DNA from: Caecitellus pseudoparvulus
Lineage: Eukaryota; Protista; Bigyra: Bicosoecida
NCBI GenBank assembly: GCA_965644315.1
Contig: CBFFRQ010000056.1
Coordinates: 434,001-498,000, forward strand
DNA length: 64,000 nucleotides
Reading direction: 5' to 3'
The position numbers and the translations under genes are program-made. The notes beneath the pieces are model-generated. The model was not told where the DNA came from. It saw only the letters and a list, made by a program, of their open reading frames with translations, and ran no database searches. How positions within the stretch are numbered: the stretch's first letter is position 1; each line of letters begins with the position of its first letter. This document shows, one piece after another, positions 1,919 to 11,927 of this stretch.

Positions 1919-4900
1919 TCAGTTGCCTGGCCGAGGGCGCTTGGCAGAGGGGGTCGGCCCGCTGCGTTGCCGAGGCCGCTTGGCGTTGCTGCCTCGACCC
2001 GTGCCGGGGCGGGCAGGGGGGGAGGCCATGCCCTGCTGCGCCTGTGCTTCGCGCTGAGCCCGGCTGGCCAGGAGCATGGCCAGGGCGGGGGAAGCCCCCC
2101 CGCCGCCCAGCGCAGGGGGGGGCTGGGCGGGGGAGGCTGATAGCCCCTTCAGGGACAGACGCAGCCCCCCCCCTGGCGTGGTGGGTGCTGCCGCCAGGAG
2201 GCGGGCCAGGAGGCCTTGGGCGTTGGAGAGGAGGGGGGTGTACTGGGTGTCGGGGATGAGGTGGGAGGGGGGCAGGGCGGGGGTGGAGCCCCCCCCCCCG
2301 CCGATGAGCACAGCCGGAACACCCACCCCTACACAGGCGGCGGCGTCGAGTGCCACTTCCCAGGGGGAGGGGCCGGTGCGGCGGCGCGTGGATGCGACGA
2401 AAGATCGCATGCGGGCTTTGAGGCTGGCGGGGTGCTTGACGCGGTAGTAGAAGGCGATGACGTCAGGGGTGGCCTTGTTGGGCAGGTGCGCGGCGATGCG
2501 CCGGAACACCTTGCCGTACACCATGAAGGCCATGAAGAACACGAGTTTCTCCAGGTCCGCCCACGGCGCCGCCAATTCAACGCCTGCCTCGTCGCACTGG
2601 GCCCAGGTCGGAACACGCGGACCGCAGTCGGCAGGTCCAATCGGAACACCCTCCCAGGTCACCTGTGTTCCGCCCACGCCGGGGCGGCGGCGGCGTCCAG
2701 GCGTCTTGAAGGTGGGGCGGGGGGGCACCTCCACGCCGCCCAGCTGCAGAACACTGGTGATGGTGTTCTCAGCTGGGCACTGCAGGGCCAGCGGCAGGGG
2801 GGGTGCGGCCTGTGTGTCAGTGGGGGACACCGCCGCCGCCCACCGGTCCCCTGCCCCGTGCAGCGCAGAGGGGGGGGACACCGTGCCGGCCAGGGCGGCA
2901 GGGGAGGGGGGTGGCACCCGGCTGGCAACCCCCCCCCCGCCTGCGACACCTGCACCCCCATGCACGGTGAGTGCGGAAATAGCTGCCGCATGTGCCGAGG
3001 GCAGGAGACCCCGCCCCCCCGCCGCCAGTCGAGTCGCCTCCGCTGCCAGTCGCGAAACGCCCTCCGCATGCAGCAGAGCGGCGGCCGTCCAGGCAGTGCG
3101 GGAGGAGGGGGGTGCGAGGGAGGGGGGTGTCCGCAGGGACGCGAGGGGGGGCGGTGTCCGGACCAGGCCCCAGTGGCGCGCCCCTGTCCCCCAGGCGGAC
3201 CCCGCCCCCGCCGCAGCTGGGGGTGCGGCGGCGCCCTCATCCACTGACACCTGCAGGTGCAGGTGTGGGTGCAGGGTGCGGAGGAGGTGCCAGGGCGATC
3301 TTTCATCGCACGCGCTGTGCCGCTGGGCACGGGCCTGGAGGGGTGTCAGGGGGGGGGTGCAGGAGGGGTCGCGGAACCACCCCGCGCCCCACCCCCCCGG
3401 ACCCGCCCGCCAGGCGCGGGCTTGGTGGGCCCACCCCGGGTCACATTGCCCCACCGCCAGCATGGCTAGGGCTGTCGCCTGGTCCGCACTGGACCCCTGT
3501 CTCGCCCACGCCGCCAGTGTCCCCTCCAGGCCGGTGGAGGTGCGGGCGCCGCCGGCTGTGGCGGGGGCGGCGGGGGCGGCGGAGGGCGCGATGCGAGATC
3601 GCGTCGCCCGTGTCCCCCCCCCTCCCGCCTCTAGCCAAGCCAGTGTGCCCTCACTGCCCAGGGCCACCCCCACCAACTCAGCCTCCACGGTGCCCAGGCC
3701 GCCGTCAGAGGAGGGGGTGGCGAGGCCCGGCGTAATACGCAGGGCGCGCTCCCGCCGCGCCATGGCAGCCAGGGCCGGCCGCCGCATGAGGCAGTACCCC
3801 GCAGCCAGGGCACGCCGCGCCGCGACACGCGACCGCACACGCGCAAGTATTGCTGCGGTCATGGCCGGCTGCAACGCAGCATGGCTCGCGAGCGTGACGG
3901 CCATGTGCGGGGCCTGGGCGGGGCAGGCGTACAAGGGGGTCTCCCCCGCGGCGGGGTGCAAGTGAGGCAAGTGCGCGGCAAGTGCTTCCACCGACACCCC
4001 CGGCACCCGCACCGCCTCGCCCCCGCACGCCCCCACGCTCCCTGCGAAGGTGGGGTGGTCCCCGCCCCCCCGCGACAGGCCGCGGGTCGCAGCGACGTAC
4101 GATGGTCGCAGCGACGTCGGTGTCGACCACGGAGTCACTGGTGACAACAAGTGCGTCGCTGCGATGCGGGGGAGGGTGGCGGCGGGCACACCCAGCAGAG
4201 CCACTGCGGGGGCGGCGGTGTCCCCACCCCCTGCTGCGTTGCCGCACACGCCCCCCGCAGTGACTCCCGCCTGCCAGCTGAGGCGCAGCAGGGGGTGTGC
4301 CGCCACCACCGCCCGGGCGCGGTTTTCCGCACACACGGCCCGCCAGTCGCCGGCGCACGCGACGTCGCCCCGACCAGAAACGCTCAAGAGACTGGCCACG
4401 GCGCCGCTGACACTGCTGCTGCCGGGGGGGCGAGCCAGAGTGCGGGCCGACCACACTTGGCCAGCGGCACGGCAGGTGCGGAAATAGGTGCGCAACGCCG
4501 CACCCATGCACCGCTCGCTCTCCAGGGCCGCGGCGGCAGCAGCAGAGCGTGCGGCAGCGACAGCCTCTGCTGCGCTTCCAAATTCCGCACCGTACCTGCG
4601 CAGGCGTGCCGCCCACTCGCCCCAGGCCACGGGCGTGTCGCCGGCCTGGGCGGGGGCGTCTGCTGCGTTGTCAGATTCCGCAGGCGCGCCGCCGGCTCCC
4701 GTGCGCCCTGTCAAGCCGCGCGCCCGCCGCGCCTTGCTGCGTTTCAGGGAGTGTTCCAGCCGCTCAGACAAGTCCTTCCGCGCGGCCAAGGCCGCGGCAG
4801 CCGCCGCTTCAGCAGCGGCAGCTGCCGCGCGTTTCTCGGCTGCAGCCTGTTGGCGTTTCGCCCTGCGTTGCAGCGTTTCGCGTTTCGCGGCGAGGGCAGC

Positions 4901-5899
4901 GCCGACTGTCGCCTTGGCGCTCTCGAGCCGCCCCCGCGCATCACGCAATGCAGCGGACAATTGGCCCAGTCGCCGCATGCCTTCCATGACAGCGTCGGAG
5001 GAGGGCGGCGTGATGGGCCCACCCTCCGCCGCCCCCGGCAGCAGGCGCAGGATGCCCGCCGCCTCGCCCTGCACTTGCTCCACCTCTGCCTCCAAGGCGG
5101 AGCGGAGGGGGTGTGGAGGGGGGTGAGGGGGGGGCTGGGGGCACCCCCGTCCCCGGCGCCGTGCTGGGATGGTGCTGGGGAGGGGGCGGCGGGGGGGGCG
5201 CCTGGGGCTGGCCTGCGGGGGAGATGGGCCCACTGCCGCGGGGGTGGGCCCACTGTGGTGGAGCATGGCGCCACGTGCCCCCCCCCGCATGGGGCGGGTC
5301 GCGGGGGGGCTGCGGTGCGTAGGCCCACGCCCCCGCTGGGGGGACCGCATCCACTGGTCCCGCACCGTGGGAGGGGTGTGAGGGGGGGGGTACCGCGGAC
5401 GCCCCCGGGGGGCACCCGCCCTCCACCCCATCGTGGGGGGGTTCGACGGCGGCGGGGGGGGTCCAGGGGGGGAGCGTGGACCCCGCCCCCACCCCCCCTC
5501 CCCGCCACCCAGACGACCCCTTGCCCATCCAAGCGCGAGGGGGTGTGAGGGGGGTCGTGGAAGGGCCGCGGGGGGGTGCGGGGGGGGTGGACCCGGCAAC
5601 ACCTCCCCCTCCTCTGACCCCGAGCGGGGCCGCGACACCACCAGCCCCCCCCTGCGCCCCCCCTGCATGTACTGCCGCCCATCACCAGGCGGCCCCTGTC
5701 GGGGGTGTGGAGGGGGGGGTCCCTGGTGTCCGCGGGGGGGATGCTGGCGAGGGGGCGGGTGCGCCGGCGTGTGCCCCATGTGGGGTGGGCCAGGCCCGTC
5801 CCCTGCCCACCCCCCGTCGCCGCGGGGTGCTCGAATGAACGGCAGCGCCGCCACAAGACCACCTCCGCGGGGAGGCCCTCCCCGCCCGCGCCCGCTCAT
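1919..5899 (-). CDS. NCoR/SMRT/Snt1-like corepressor with SANT (DAD) domain
   Basis: SANT domain PWADLEKLVFFMAFMVYGKVFRRIAAHLPNKATPDVIAFYYRVKH. Upstream segments resemble the NCoR N-terminal GPS2/TBL1 region: VCAENRARAVVAAH ~ IYDENRKKAEEAH and ETPLYACPAQ ~ ELPLYNQPSD. Start placed at MSGRGRGG (5899), because the ORF further 5' overlaps the next gene. Confidence 0.75.
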   Translation of the reverse strand: MSGRGRGGPPRGGGLVAALPFIRAPRGDGGWAGDGPGPPHMGHTPAHPPPRQHPPRGHQGPPPPHPRQGPPGDGRQYMQGGRRGGLVVSRPRSGSEEGEVLPGPPPPHPPAALPRPPSHPLALGWARGRLGGGEGGWGRGPRSPPGPPPPPSNPPTMGWRAGAPRGRPRYPPPHTPPTVRDQWMRSPQRGRGPTHRSPPATRPMRGGARGAMLHHSGPTPAAVGPSPPQASPRRPPRRPLPSTIPARRRGRGCPQPPPHPPPHPLRSALEAEVEQVQGEAAGILRLLPGAAEGGPITPPSSDAVMEGMRRLGQLSAALRDARGRLESAKATVGAALAAKRETLQRRAKRQQAAAEKRAAAAAAEAAAAAALAARKDLSERLEHSLKRSKARRARGLTGRTGAGGAPAESDNAADAPAQAGDTPVAWGEWAARLRRYGAEFGSAAEAVAAARSAAAAAALESERCMGAALRTYFRTCRAAGQVWSARTLARPPGSSSVSGAVASLLSVSGRGDVACAGDWRAVCAENRARAVVAAHPLLRLSWQAGVTAGGVCGNAAGGGDTAAPAVALLGVPAATLPRIAATHLLSPVTPWSTPTSLRPSYVAATRGLSRGGGDHPTFAGSVGACGGEAVRVPGVSVEALAAHLPHLHPAAGETPLYACPAQAPHMAVTLASHAALQPAMTAAILARVRSRVAARRALAAGYCLMRRPALAAMARRERALRITPGLATPSSDGGLGTVEAELVGVALGSEGTLAWLEAGGGGTRATRSRIAPSAAPAAPATAGGARTSTGLEGTLAAWARQGSSADQATALAMLAVGQCDPGWAHQARAWRAGPGGWGAGWFRDPSCTPPLTPLQARAQRHSACDERSPWHLLRTLHPHLHLQVSVDEGAAAPPAAAGAGSAWGTGARHWGLVRTPPPLASLRTPPSLAPPSSRTAWTAAALLHAEGVSRLAAEATRLAAGGRGLLPSAHAAAISALTVHGGAGVAGGGGVASRVPPPSPAALAGTVSPPSALHGAGDRWAAAVSPTDTQAAPPLPLALQCPAENTITSVLQLGGVEVPPRPTFKTPGRRRRPGVGGTQVTWEGVPIGPADCGPRVPTWAQCDEAGVELAAPWADLEKLVFFMAFMVYGKVFRRIAAHLPNKATPDVIAFYYRVKHPASLKARMRSFVASTRRRTGPSPWEVALDAAACVGVGVPAVLIGGGGGSTPALPPSHLIPDTQYTPLLSNAQGLLARLLAAAPTTPGGGLRLSLKGLSASPAQPPPALGGGGASPALAMLLASRAQREAQAQQGMASPPARPGTGRGSNAKRPRQRSGPTPSAKRPRPGN

Positions 5900-6444
5900 G
5901 TGCCTGTGGCAATGCGGCAGACGCGGCAGCGTGCGGTGCGGAAATTGGTCTGCCGCCCTCCGTGCACGCGGCCACTCACCTGCCGCCACCCCATCGAGGC
6001 CCGCCGCCACGACGACTGCCTTGAAACCTGCCCTGACGAGATGGATGCCCTCCCCTGCCTCTGGCACCTCGGTCCCTGTGGGGGGGGTGAAGGGGGGCGC
6101 CCGCAGTGTGGAGGGCTGCCTGCGGCATTTGAAGCATCTGCGCCCTGCAGTTGCCACTCGTACATGTCCAGGAGTCCACCTCAGCCAGCACGCCGTGCTC
6201 CTGATCCTTTGCAAAACAGCTCTCCGGCGTGGTGTGGCCTCGAAATTCGGTGTAGGGCGCCGCTGGTGGCCCTGCGCGCGTTTTCCCAAGTTGGCGGGGG
6301 AGCTGCCTGGTGCAGGGCGGTCACGAGTGCCGCCACGCCTGCCCAGGCTCAGCGGGTGGGGGCTGTGCTCTGTTGGGGGTTGTGCTGCGTGGCGTGGCTT
6401 GCATTCGCGCGGTGCACACGGGGGGGGGGGGATGGGACCCCCCC

Positions 6445-9400
6445 TCAGCTGGACGTGTGAGGGGGCTTCACCTGGCGCAGGGTGAGGGCGAGGCGACCCC
6501 CCCCCACGACGGCAGCGGCCCCCCCCGGAGCCTTGCCAGGCAGAACACGCACCATGCCCATCAGAACACGGGTGGCGGGCCCCCCCCACACCAGCGCATC
6601 CCCCGCGCCCACCTTCACAGTGGGCGCCTTGCGGGCCCCACCGCCGCCGCCCGCGGCGCCAGGAGTCACCAGGCTGTAAGCAATTTCCGCAGTCGCCCCG
6701 AAGCTGATGCTGACACTGGGCGCACCTGCACGGGTGGCTGCGGGGGAGAGGGCGGGCTGGGGGGCCAGTGACTCCCGCCCCGTGGACGGAAAGTAACGCA
6801 CCAGGCCGACGGTGGGTGTGAACGCACGAGGCCCCCAGTCCCCCGCGCACGCCCCCTCATCCGCCGCCGCCGCCGCAGCCACCGCCACCGCGCCCAGGCC
6901 TGCCAGGGGGGGGGGCAGGGGGGGGCAGGGGGCCCCATCCACTGCCCGTGTGTGTTCCACCCTGAGGGACTTGGTGTTCCAGGTGCCCCCCAGCGGCAGG
7001 TCGTGCCACGGCTGTGGCTCAGCACCCCGGTTCAGGGGGCGGTACCACCCCCCCCCGACACCCCCCCTGCACCCCCATCCCCAGCCCCAGCACGCGGCAC
7101 GCCTCCACCACCACCCCCTGCACCGCCCGAGGCACCAACCCCCTCACCAGCACTAGCCCAGGCAGCAACACCTGTGTGCGGGGAGCTGCACTGCCGCTGG
7201 GCTGATGTGCTGCTGATTGCAGCCAGGCCTCCAGTGGGCCCATGAAGTCAGGGGGGGGCAGGGGGGGTGCTGTCGCCGGCCAGGGGATGCTGCCGCCGCC
7301 GCCGGCACCCCCCCGAGAGTGCCTGCGCAGGTACACCAGGAGATCGGGGTGGGGCGCTGCGCCTGGGGCGGTGGACCGCAGGTCCAGGGTGGGCCCACCC
7401 TCCGCCCCAGGCGCATCCCCCCCTGCCACCCCCGTAATGGGCGTGCTGGCCTCGAACCCCGCAGCGCCAAGTGTTGCCCACTGCTGTGATGTGCGGATGA
7501 TGTCGGGGCGGCCGGGGGGTGGGCCCACCTTCCCCGCCCGGGCCTGCCCCAGGCGCCCCGTGTCCCCCGGCAGCGTCCAAAAGTCCGCACCCCCCACCGC
7601 ACTGGCCACCGCACAGGCCCGCAGTTGGGCTGGCGGCAGTGTCCCGGCGACCGCCCCAATGGGCTGAGCACCCCCCTCCGGCCGGGGCACCATGAACGCA
7701 CCAGTGTGGGAGGCGGGGGATGCGGGGATACGGGGTCGGGGCCGGCGCCGGCGGGGGGCCTGGGGGGCGGGGTCCTCCCCCGCACCCTCCGCACCCCCCC
7801 CCTCTAGGGGGTCACCATGCTGCAACGCAGCAGACCGCCCAAAGGCGCCCCCCCCTCCAGCACGGCGGGGGGGCGACGGTGGCGCCACCCCCGCCGCAGC
7901 GGCCCTTCGCTGCATGCGTTTCTGGGCGTCTGCGGAAATTGCAGCGTACACATCCGCCGCCCGCCCCGAGAGGGTCGTGTTCGCAAAGGCGCCGCCGCCC
8001 ACGCCAGGCGTCGACTTGCCGGTGTGCGCCAGGTCCGGGTGTTCCGCCTTCGTGTTCCGGCTCGGCGGCGGCAGCGCCTCCGCTGCCCTGTGGGCATGTT
8101 TCCCCACTGGCACGCCCAGGCGCTGCAGGCCGGCCACCGAGCCCGCCGCCGCGACGCCCCCCCCCACCACGCCACTGCGCCGCACAGCCGCCTCGCTGAC
8201 GCCGTAGCTGGCGGCAAGGTCCGCGGAGGAGGCGTCCTGCTGCGTTTCGGAGATGGCCAGGGCGCCGCCGGTGAGGGTGAGGTCCAGGGTCATGCCGCGA
8301 CCCGCCTTGCGGGCCATGAGTGACTCCTGGCGGGCGGCCTCTGCGGCGGCGGCGGCGGCCTGTTCTGCTGGGGACAGCCACATGGAGGTGGCATCGGAGA
8401 AATAGTCCGCACTGTCGTCGAACACCTGCGACCGCGCGACGGCGGTGCGGTCGAACTCCAGCAGGCGGCTCTTGCGGGCGAGGGCGGCGGTGTACCCGTC
8501 ACCCCCCCCCTCCTCCCCCCCCGCATCCCCCCCTCGGCTCATGTACGCCTTGTCAGCCTCCTTGGACAGCGCTTCCGCGTGCTGGCTGGACACCTCTGCG
8601 GCACGGGCCCGGGCGCCCTCAATTCTCCGCCGCCCCATGTCTGCGGCGAAATGCAACGCAGCACCGCAGAAGGAGCACAGGCGCCCCGCCTCACGCTCAC
8701 AGATGACCTTGCCGCAGGCGGTACAGTTGCCCAGCAGGGCGTGGATAGTGCCCATGCAAGGGCAGTACGTACCACGGGAGGCGGCGACACCCACCCCCTC
8801 GGCACCCCCCACCCTGGCCCCCGCTGCCTCAGCGCCAGCGCCCTGCAAGGAGCCCTGCCGTGAGACGCGGGGGGGCAGGGGGGCGGGGGCGTGCTGCGTT
8901 GGGGCGACGCCGGTGGAGGTGCCGAGGCCCCCCCCCCAACCACCCCCCCCCTGTCCCCGCACCTTGCCCGCCATCACGTCCGCATCATCCGCACTGAGAA
9001 CACGGGGTCCGCTGGACGCCGCGGTCTGTTCCGCCCCCACCACCCGCACAGAAGCCAGGATGGCAGCCGCCACATCCTCGCCGTCCTGAGGGGGGGGTGA
9101 GGGGGGGGTGGCGTCACCATCGCCACCGTCCCCCCCTGCGTGCGCCGAGGGGGGGGGGGGGCTCCGAGGCGCCTTGCCCCCCCCCATGAGGCTCGCAAAG
9201 GCTGCCATGTCGTCATCGCCCCCCTTGCCGTGCCGCTTCACACCAGAAGTAGCCATGCCCGTGGGGGGGGCGTGTGCGGTGCTGGAGGGGGGTGCCTTGT
9301 GGCCCGACACACCCCCCCCTCCGACACGACGACCCCCCCCCTTCCGCCCCCGCTTGCCCTTCACCACAGTCACCTGGCGCCCCCCCCGGCGCTCCAACTG

Positions 9401-9643
9401 GGCCGCTGCCTCCACCGCTGGGGCGGGGGCGGGGGCAGGGGCCTCCTCCGGCAGTGCCGCAGACAGCCCCGCCACCAGCTCACCCACGGCAGGTGCGTCG
9501 CCGAACATGGACGCCGCGTACTCGCGCAGGTCTGCTGCGTTTCGGAAGGTGAGCAGGTAGTCCACTGTCTCGTCGCTTTCGAAGCCCAGGAGCAGGCTGA
9601 CCTGGTTGGCCAGCCAGGCGCGGGAGCCGACGACGCCAGCCAT
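6445..9643 (-). CDS. TRIP4: ASC-1/TRIP4 (RQT4)-like zf-C2HC5 protein fused to a degenerate ASCH segment and an inactive AlkB-like domain; 1-nt frameshift in a G-run at 7048-7067
   Basis: Contains a PWI-like N-terminus, the C2HC5 finger CPCMGTIHALLGNCTACGKVICEREAGRLCSFCG, and the TRIP4 motif KSRLLEFDRTAVARSQVFDDSADYF...WLS. The AlkB start LLPGLVLVRGLVPRAVQGVVVEACRVLGLG continues, after removal of one G, as GGWYRP...LGGTWNTKS...PSVSISFGATAEIAY...GDALVWGGPATRVLMGM...GRLALTLRQ to the TGA at 6445. Confidence 0.85.
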
Positions 9644-9789
9644 GCCTTGGCGTGGTGGCGACGCAGGTTCAGGTTCCGCACCTGACGCGAGGCGGCGAGG
9701 GTGCGCGCACAGGGAGACTCGGACGAGGGGAGCGTGTGCGAGGACCACTGCACGTGTGCATTTGGGTTGGGTTTATTACTGGCTGCCCT

Positions 9790-11927
9790 TCACATGTGCT
9801 GCAGGTAGTGCTGCAGGGTGACGCGCAGTTGGGCGACAGAGGCGGGAGGGGGGGCTGACCCCCCCTGCGTCACCGCCTCGCCCTGCAAGGCGCGGGCCAC
9901 CCCGTGCAGCAGGCGCACGTTGTCCACCCCCAGGGTGCCGCTGCTGATCAGCTGCACAGTCTCCATGGCAGCCTGCAGGGCGGTGAGGGGGGGGGCACCA
10001 CCCCCCCCCTCCCCGCCGGGAGCAGCTGACCCCGCGCCACCACCCTCCAACACCCCCTCCGGCATGGGCACGCCCAGCACACAGGCCAGCAGTGTCTTGT
10101 GTGCCAGGAGGTGTGGCACAAAGGCGGGCATGGCCCCCTCCAGCCCCAGCACCACGCGGCACATGCGGCGATGCAGCGCGGCATGCTGCCCCTTCAACGC
10201 CGCCACCGTGCCGGCCAGGGCATGCAGGTGGGCGGAGCTGAGCATGCCCTCGCGCAGGAGGCATGACAGGACGTCCTCCAGGGCACTGGTGAGGGCCAGG
10301 GGCACGCTGTCGGGGGCGGCATCCCCCCCCGACGTGGGCGTGGAAGCTTGCAGCTTCAACACATCCAGGGTGGTTTGCAGAGCGAGCGGATCGGCCACCA
10401 GCTGCTCGATGGCCGCTGCAGGCAGCACCATGGACACATCTCGCACCAGCTGGAAGCTGTGCATGGACAGGGTGGCGCTCGACGCAGCCTGCGCCGCGGA
10501 CAGCAGGCTGCTCCACGTGTCAGCGGAAACTGCAACCCCATCCGCACCCACTGCAGGCAGGGACTTGAGCAGAGCCGAGGGGGCAGCCGGCTGGGCCCCT
10601 TGGCCCACTGGGACAGGGGGTGTGTCACCCCCCACCGCCTCCTCCCCCCCCTCCTCCTCGGGTGGGGGCTGCTCCCCCTCCTCCTCCTCCTCCTCGCTGA
10701 ACGGTGTGTCAGCACCCTGCTCGTCGGGTTGCTGGGTGTCCACATTGTCGTTTGCGGCGCCGGCGGCGCCCCCCAGCGCGGAAATCGTCTCGATCATGCT
10801 CTCCAGGATGCCCGACGTGGCGATGAAGGAGCAGGCCTGGCGCCGCGCCTCCACTCCGCCGTCGCCGCCCGTCAAGCGCGACACCAACCGCTGCGCACCC
10901 AGTACCTGCACATCGGGCGCCCCATGCGTCAGCTGCAAGTGGGCCATGGTCAGGTGGTGCTGCAGCACCATGCGTTTGAACGCGTGTGTCTTCACACCGC
11001 CGAAGCGCGACTCAGCCTTGTCCGTCACCGCCACGATCATTTCGTGCACCGTGTTGGCAACCGTTAGCAACTCGCACTGCGCAGAGGGCAAGGAGCCGGG
11101 CATGGTGGCGCCACGCTGCAGGCGCAGCAGCATGGCCTGACACAAATCAATCAGGGTGCCCTGCGCAAACGCCTCCGTGCAGGTCCACCGCGCCTTGTCC
11201 AGAATGGACCGCGCGTAGCAGTCCAACTCCGCCAGCGGCACGGGCTCCACGCTCTGCCGTTGCAGGCGGTCGATGGCCGCAGCATAGCCCCCGGCATCTG
11301 CAAAGGCATTGGCGGCCAGGATCCAGTACCGGCTGGCGCCGCCGGCGGGGATTTTGAAGCTGGCGCCGTTGTACTGGTCGGCCTCCGGCGTATCACCCCG
11401 CAGGCCGTGGGCGGGAGTGCAGAAGAACTTGCTGCAGTCCGCAGTTGCCAGAAACACGCGGGAAATCTGCAGCAGCATGACTTGCGGCACGTTGCCCTCG
11501 ATGTTCTGCATGTACCACACCACCAGCTGCGTGACGGGGACCGGGACGGGGGGTTTCCGGAGTGGCTAAGCGGCAGCGCACGAATGTGGTGCAGGTCGAG
11601 TGCTGGTCACCGCCCCACGCACCTTCAGCAACTCTTGCACGAACTCAGTGATGGCAATGGCAAAGGGCTCTGTGGAACTCACGGCGCCCATCATGCGGCG
11701 CATGGCAGGGGACAGCACCTCCTCCAGAAATTCCTCCTGCTTGCGTTGGCGTGGTGGTGTGCCTTGACTGCATGTGCATGCGCTAGGCCCCTGCTCCAAC
11801 GCACCCGCGCCTCGCCGTTCAAAGACCCCGACCGAATGGCAGACAGGCGTTCCCTCAGCACCTGCAGCTCCTCCAGGTTTTCGTACGGCGGCAGGGAGGT
11901 GTCCTGCTCAGACTGCTCCGCTGCCAT
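9790..11927 (-). CDS. Helical-solenoid protein resembling the USP9/USP24/USP34 N-terminal region, with no catalytic domain
   Basis: Three exons joined in phase 0 by GTGCGT...GCAG introns (about 11737-11804 and 11527-11622). SRYWILAANAFADAGGYAAAIDRL and LQHHLTMAHLQLTHGAPDVQVLGAQRL resemble USP9X [22 protein letters not shown] and [28 protein letters not shown]. The gene is well supported; the family call is tentative. Confidence 0.55.

Follow-up and report, generated by a model that had tools for sequence, protein, structure and literature searches.

The window analysed here, a stretch of 64,000 nucleotides from contig CBFFRQ010000056.1 of the bicosoecid protist Caecitellus pseudoparvulus, carries on its minus strand a gene in which a homolog of TRIP4 (ASC-1 in humans, Rqt4 in yeast), a subunit of the ASCC/RQT helicase complex that serves ribosome rescue and DNA repair, continues into a domain of the AlkB type. 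The coding region begins with a methionine codon at 9643 and ends with the stop codon at 6445-6447. As assembled it has no single open reading frame (ORF). The TRIP4 part lies in the minus-strand ORF 7019-9748, which is closed by the stop at 7019-7021, a second frame (frame B) stays open between 7143 and its stop at 6445-6447, and the switch from one to the other falls inside the AlkB domain, in the G-runs at 7048-7098. The original prediction, made from the letters of the window alone, had described this gene as a fusion of TRIP4 with a catalytically dead AlkB fold, and every motif it cited was found in the translations of the window. The two frame pieces were searched and folded each on its own. 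The gene as a whole and the parts around the frame switch are as follows.

6445-9643, minus strand: whole TRIP4-AlkB coding region, based on ORFs, translations, Pfam matches on both pieces and the uninterrupted orthologous ORFs P0001, P0002 and P0133
7076-7219, minus strand: N-terminal portion of AlkB, read in frame A, which is that of TRIP4, positions 11-58 of the family AlkB hidden Markov model (HMM), 22 bits
7048-7098, minus strand: frame-break zone, with G9 at 7048-7056, G7 at 7061-7067 and shorter G-runs up to 7098
6472-7056, minus strand: AlkB core, the double-stranded beta-helix, in frame B, positions 58-250 of the family HMM, 108 bits

That the two halves belong together is indicated by the family profile, for which the AlkB ends of the 19 fusion relatives were used. 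Its first portion finds its match in the tail of the TRIP4 frame, the remainder in the next frame, and the two matches abut at the break. A single profile split between two frames means that the frame change cuts through one and the same AlkB domain, and judged from the sequence the TRIP4 and AlkB halves are therefore one gene, as the original prediction had it. Indeed, the orthologous ORFs with the same domains are uninterrupted, with 1003 residues in P0001, 972 in P0002 and 997 in P0133; their identity to the window is 48% in the TRIP4 part and 38-41% in the AlkB part. The neighbouring gene upstream is orthologous as well.

The break itself is bridged by Logan contigs from two public runs that belong to separate studies, namely X3, a marine metagenome run, and X6, a run labelled with another organism code, each of which differs from the window by 1-2%. 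Both have one letter more than the window behind 7047. In detail, X3 has a net surplus of five letters over its span, which includes the break zone, and X6 a net surplus of eight, three of them at 6419, past the stop; four extra letters are unplaced in each, and the interval 7063-7098 is masked as repeat. A surplus of five letters equals two modulo three and would carry the TRIP4 frame into frame B. As two related populations appear to lack the break and three more distant orthologues have none, it is either a homopolymer error of the assembly or a very recent lesion in this strain. The possibility that an intron spans the break was rejected, since a lone GT..AG pair encloses 27 letters, a multiple of three, and the related DNA has extra letters. 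A near-identical strain was not found in metagenome contigs of the Joint Genome Institute, neither by a scan with back-translated peptides nor by a scan with an exact 26-mer. At the P0133 locus the TRI4_N domain is encoded in a separate 89-codon ORF (L013:5792-6061 and L014:5792-6061), which the 997-codon ORF overlaps with its start, and a frame change or a small intron may exist there too.

The AlkB half is recognised both by profile and by structure. In the frame 6448-7065 the Pfam domain 2OG-FeII_Oxy_2 (PF13532) scores 35.3 bits against a cut-off of 31.2, and the AlphaFold2 model of the frame B piece reaches a predicted local distance difference test value (pLDDT) of 87. Its top match in a Foldseek search was rice OsALKBH1 (5XOI) with an E value of 4e-14 and a template modelling score of 0.75, followed by E. 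coli AlkB and then by ALKBH1/2/3. On this model the domain keeps the double-stranded beta-helix fold of the AlkB type. For the catalytic positions, the domain was aligned with rice ALKBH1 (5XEG) and the 19 fusion relatives, and an alignment of 29 rows (A1) combined fusion and non-fusion AlkB domains. The positions concerned are the following.

6757-6765, minus strand: A-P-Q in place of the H-x-D iron ligands, from the alignments with 5XEG and the relatives
6559-6561, minus strand: methionine in place of the distal iron-binding histidine, a column at which histidine is nearly invariant in A1
6790-6798, minus strand: R-Y-F in place of N-x-Y, from the alignment with the 19 fusion relatives
6475-6495, minus strand: R-x5-R motif (RLALTLR), kept, both arginines being invariant in A1

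Rice OsALKBH1 (5XEG/5XOI) and E. coli AlkB, the best matches in sequence and structure, share with the window domain the double-stranded beta-helix and the R-x5-R motif, whereas H-x-D...H has become A-x-Q...M, N-x-Y has become R-Y-F, and the window domain is fused to TRIP4. The N-x-Y residues, which are mostly conserved among the 19 fusion relatives, correspond to N120 and Y122, the 2-oxoglutarate contacts of E. coli AlkB, and the D/E that follows the H-x-D motif is altered in the window as well. Both iron-binding histidines, the distal one included, are kept in all 19 fusion relatives, and the aspartate of H-x-D is kept in all but P0007, which has serine, and P0037/P0134, which have glycine. 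The X3 and X6 contigs span the iron-ligand codons and show neither a difference nor an indel there, only a change of proline to alanine beside the motif, so that the loss is real rather than an artefact of the assembly and is common to the related populations. A local frameshift as the cause of the lost H-x-D motif was rejected, the other two frames not yielding the motif. In short, the loss of the iron triad and the retention of both arginines are as had been predicted, and the domain would no longer be able to bind Fe(II) or to oxidise anything. The same prediction had proposed a sensor of 2-oxoglutarate as one option, which is disfavoured because the N-x-Y contacts have changed to R-Y-F.

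In the proteins P0037/P0134 (H-Q-G) and P0007 (H-Q-S) both histidines stand without the aspartate, a pattern that is known among 2-oxoglutarate enzymes from the halogenases; the loss of the aspartate could also be the first step of a decay like that of the window gene. Elsewhere in the genome there are six further AlkB loci (L001-L006), and at least one of these paralogues, L001, has an intact motif. A second weak AlkB-like match of 30 bits, just below the Pfam cut-off, lies on the contig of the window, about 15 kilobases past the end of the window (L007, G000:C56:512730-513110).

The first half of the gene is the only TRIP4/Rqt4 homolog of the genome, which was searched as 30.6 megabases (Mb) in 215 contigs and contains the gene in one copy; the sequence is also present in marine metagenomes. 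Three TRIP4 modules stand in TRIP4's own order, followed by a linker.

9509-9619, minus strand: TRI4_N (PF23135), residues 9-45, the domain earlier called PWI-like, 20.3 bits, under the Pfam cut-off of 27.8
8648-8767, minus strand: zf-C2HC5 zinc finger (PF06221), residues 293-332, 37.1 bits against a Pfam cut-off of 25.8
8276-8416, minus strand: TRIP4 third domain (TRIP4_3rd, PF23134) with the motif LLEFD...DDSADYF, residues 410-456, 22.5 bits, under the Pfam cut-off of 27.7
7469-8275, minus strand: linker common with P0001, residues 457-725, including the stretch earlier taken for ASCH, from BLASTP

The zinc finger is the single zf-C2HC5 match in the 30.6 Mb, and a family HMM of the zinc finger plus third domain that was built in this analysis gives the window 172 bits. 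In the fusion relatives TRI4_N scores above or close to the Pfam cut-off, and the BLASTP alignment with P0001 covers 564 residues at 48% identity. The likeness to human TRIP4/ASC-1 and yeast Rqt4 comprises zf-C2HC5 and, at scores under their cut-offs, TRI4_N and the third domain, in the same order, in the sole such gene of a genome that also encodes an orthologue of ASCC3/Slh1, distinct from Brr2. The protein differs from human TRIP4 in lacking the ASCH domain at the C-terminus, and an AlkB-type domain stands in its place. Human TRIP4 uses its zinc finger to dock on ASCC3, at the C-terminal cassette, and its ASCH domain lies at the nucleic-acid exit; stimulation of the helicase needs ASCH (PMC10076317). 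The suggested link to the ASCC complex is helped by the presence of the ASCC3 orthologue. A complex predicted between the zinc-finger region and this orthologue's C-terminal cassette received a score of 0.00 with an uncertain fold of the partner, which speaks neither for nor against binding.

The fate of the ASCH domain is where the original prediction went astray. It had recognised an ASCH-like remnant and expected a domain search to return zf-C2HC5, 2OG-FeII_Oxy_2 and a weak ASCH match. The first two were found, but a Pfam search of the window pieces gave no ASCH match, and a TRIP4-type ASCH profile built in this analysis had no match in the window protein even with the filters switched off and E<=100 allowed. 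In two relatives this profile gives 97 and 84 bits. The stretch in question is conserved with P0001. A single ASCH match exists in the genome, on another contig, in the gene L009:640-2058 (G000:C13, about 631561-632979), an ORF of 472 residues with a C-terminal half that can be aligned over its entire length to the ASCH of fusion relatives. In searches this protein matches its own orthologues, a few short ASCH-only proteins and then TRIP4 proteins, namely that of Trypanosoma rangeli and a zf-C2HC5/TRIP4_3rd/ASCH protein. Its N-terminal half has no match in Pfam or the PDB; it carries a GGG...E motif and has SLOG-like language-model features (score 0.85), which we take as a lead only. Orthologues of L009 are P0136 (99%), P0137 (51%), which comes from the assembly of P0001, P0138 and P0139, and in this clade TRIP4 appears to be split between two genes. 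As ASCH is missing from the fusion in the nearest relatives, whose AlkB is catalytically intact, its departure preceded the loss of the triad. That the AlkB domain took over from a decayed ASCH module is accordingly not supported: no remnant is detectable and ASCH is intact in L009.

The architecture was also thought to be undescribed. However, TRIP4-AlkB proteins occur in at least 15 further 50%-identity clusters, many of them from uncultured protists, and a survey of Ginkgo from 2026 lists the zf-C2HC5 domain in GbALKBH1B without comment (PMC13296198). Among the literature searches for a description of the fusion, only the domain table of that survey mentions it. A word-indexed protein search with the AlkB piece gave no matches, the query being probably too low in complexity for the word filter. 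An exhaustive search with the AlkB piece yielded 131 representatives; all ten long matches that were scanned carry zf-C2HC5, TRIP4_3rd and AlkB, and the TRIP4 HMM built in this analysis adds five fusion proteins. Named sources are the liverwort Riccia sorocarpa (KAL3691554.1), the fern Psilotum nudum (EP00249_P020410), the alveolate Digyalum oweni (EP00916_P014990) and an MMETSP transcript, the remainder coming from metagenomes. The family is therefore widespread, essentially unstudied and not new to the databases. The public fusions, including Ginkgo GbALKBH1B, P0001, P0002 and P0133, have the domain order of the window, and the nearest relatives P0001 and P0002 resemble it further in lacking ASCH and in their gene neighbourhood. 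The difference lies in the catalytic residues, both histidines being present in all other fusions and the aspartate in all but the two lineages with P0007 and P0037/P0134. In seven checked fusion proteins (five by the Pfam cut-off, two by the ASCH profile) an ASCH domain stands between the TRIP4 part and AlkB, which makes a complete TRIP4 followed by AlkB the likely older form. The fusion proteins group together in the AlkB tree without forming one clade (12 changes against 18.6 with shuffled labels); fragmentary proteins may account for part of this.

Constraint and rate were considered separately for both halves. Long open frames are common at the G+C content of about 74% in this region, so that an open frame alone is no evidence of coding; one of 1643 codons (1919-6850, minus strand) extends out of the downstream gene and across the AlkB half in a frame that is not the domain's own. 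At the three codon positions of frame B the G+C is 0.76/0.67/0.81, the same as in the TRIP4 frame, but these values barely differ from nearby non-coding DNA and were therefore not counted as evidence. Among the strain differences in the AlkB half, five of seven are synonymous in frame B, against one of seven in frame A and none in frame C, the probability of five or more without constraint being about 0.04. For the TRIP4 half the count is 23 synonymous differences out of 31. Among 120 AlkB domains placed in a tree, that of the window has the longest end branch (1.54, median 0.34), whereas in a tree of the core from the zinc finger to the third domain its branch is 0.16, shorter than that of its sister. 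These values hint that the AlkB domain evolved fast after the loss of catalysis, yet frame B resembles coding sequence.

Taken together, the original prediction is largely right, the dead triad being real and the ASCH part wrong, and we favour, with a probability of roughly 0.6, a single TRIP4, presumed to dock on ASCC3, that carries a folded non-catalytic AlkB remnant and is encoded by one gene. In a first step, in a state common with the relative that encodes P0001, ASCH left the fusion and moved to a separate gene, behind a SLOG-like domain. Later, the AlkB domain lost both histidines, the aspartate and the N-x-Y contacts. By analogy with human TRIP4, the zinc finger would still dock the protein on the ASCC3/Slh1 helicase, and the dead domain would persist beside the helicase, most plausibly as a single-strand nucleic-acid-binding or a structural module. 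The fusion family would tether a dealkylase to the helicase, of which only a folded inactive domain would be left here, and dealkylation, if required, may be done by the intact stand-alone AlkB paralogues. The partnership of ASCC3 and ALKBH3 in humans likewise joins the ASCC helicase to an AlkB-family dealkylase. There, however, the link is in trans, concerns another AlkB subfamily and excludes TRIP4, as TRIP4 and ALKBH3 bind ASCC3 in a mutually exclusive manner (PMC10076317), whereas the AlkB domain of the window is covalently joined to TRIP4 and presumably inactive.

Several points weigh against this interpretation. The restored frame follows from length arithmetic only, the contig letters within 7063-7098 being masked, and the sole run labelled as RNA covers just 8231-8471. 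The selection test is based on seven sites, and the AlphaFold model was guided by an alignment of active homologues. Docking of the window protein on ASCC3 is presumed by analogy, and nucleic-acid binding by the dead domain is a putative role.

Two alternatives come next and appear to us about equally possible, each clearly less probable than the interpretation above. According to the first, the AlkB domain is a decaying relic, useless after the loss of catalysis and in the process of being shed, and the frameshift is real, so that the strain makes a TRIP4 truncated where the AlkB domain starts. The frame break present in the assembly would fit, as would the Pfam score, which is down to about 35 bits compared to 97-159 in most relatives, the longest branch of the AlkB tree, the loss of cofactor and base-contact positions and the low-complexity Ala/Gly inserts in the domain. 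However, the two related populations X3 and X6 appear to keep the frame, most strain differences of the AlkB half are synonymous, and this in frame B only, and the motifs that determine the fold are kept together with both arginines, in a model of good confidence.

The second is a wider one: the fusion may be an old and widespread device that wires RNA or single-stranded DNA dealkylation to ASCC3/RQT, with the protist as a separation-of-function variant that uses AlkB as a substrate clamp and has ASCH in trans on a SLOG-domain protein. If this were true, the clearing of collided ribosomes and the repair of alkylated templates would be the work of one machine. In human cells ribosome rescue or transcription is assigned to TRIP4 and alkylation repair to ALKBH3, but the occurrence of the fusion in land plants, alveolates and marine protists argues that both jobs are joined in much of eukaryotic diversity. 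With the fusion one could also test directly if stalled ribosomes are a site of repair for alkylated mRNA. Taken as a whole, the fusion family is a more interesting object than the window gene, which adds a lineage with a dead but retained enzyme part and a relocated ASCH, and which would serve as a natural control rather than as the primary discovery.

Doubtful, and less probable than either of these, is a dedicated reader of alkylated or modified nucleotides or sensor of 2-oxoglutarate that has replaced a decayed ASCH in ASCC/RQT. The retained fold and R-x5-R motif would suit such a role, and since human ASCH is located where nucleic acid leaves ASCC3 (PMC10076317), another domain at the C-terminus instead of it could make contact with the substrate. 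What speaks against the idea is that the ASCH profiles show no remnant and that ASCH persists in trans in L009. Moreover, sister lineages without ASCH keep an active-looking AlkB, so that the two losses are uncoupled, and both the N-x-Y contacts and the D/E after H-x-D have changed.

A pair of neighbouring genes, one for a TRIP4 that lacks ASCH and one that is AlkB-like, would account for the stop that closes the TRIP4 frame and the 171-codon ORF next to it, but this explanation is already contradicted and very improbable: the first quarter of the AlkB domain is in the TRIP4 frame and the rest resumes in the next frame at the profile position where the first match stops, no ATG occurs in frame B until the last third of the domain, and the orthologues are single ORFs. 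Least probable of all is an oxygenase that still works with unconventional metal ligands, since, although glutamine and methionine can ligate metals in other proteins and might do so here, both histidines and the 2-oxoglutarate contacts are gone and we know of no AlkB-family enzyme that works without both histidines.

Some minor observations concern the surroundings of the gene. In the run X9 the word depth is very high (up to about 2400) at 6784-6904 and 8236-8477 of the window. These pile-ups are GCG/GCC-rich stretches coding for poly-alanine that are matched by contigs of other organisms too, and they are no sign of expression. The upstream neighbour at 9790-11523 (minus strand) is an ORF of 577 codons; it is kept beside the TRIP4-AlkB gene in L010, in the same position and orientation (34% identity, E value 6e-42). 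A gene for an axonemal dynein light chain likewise lies upstream in L010 and L013.

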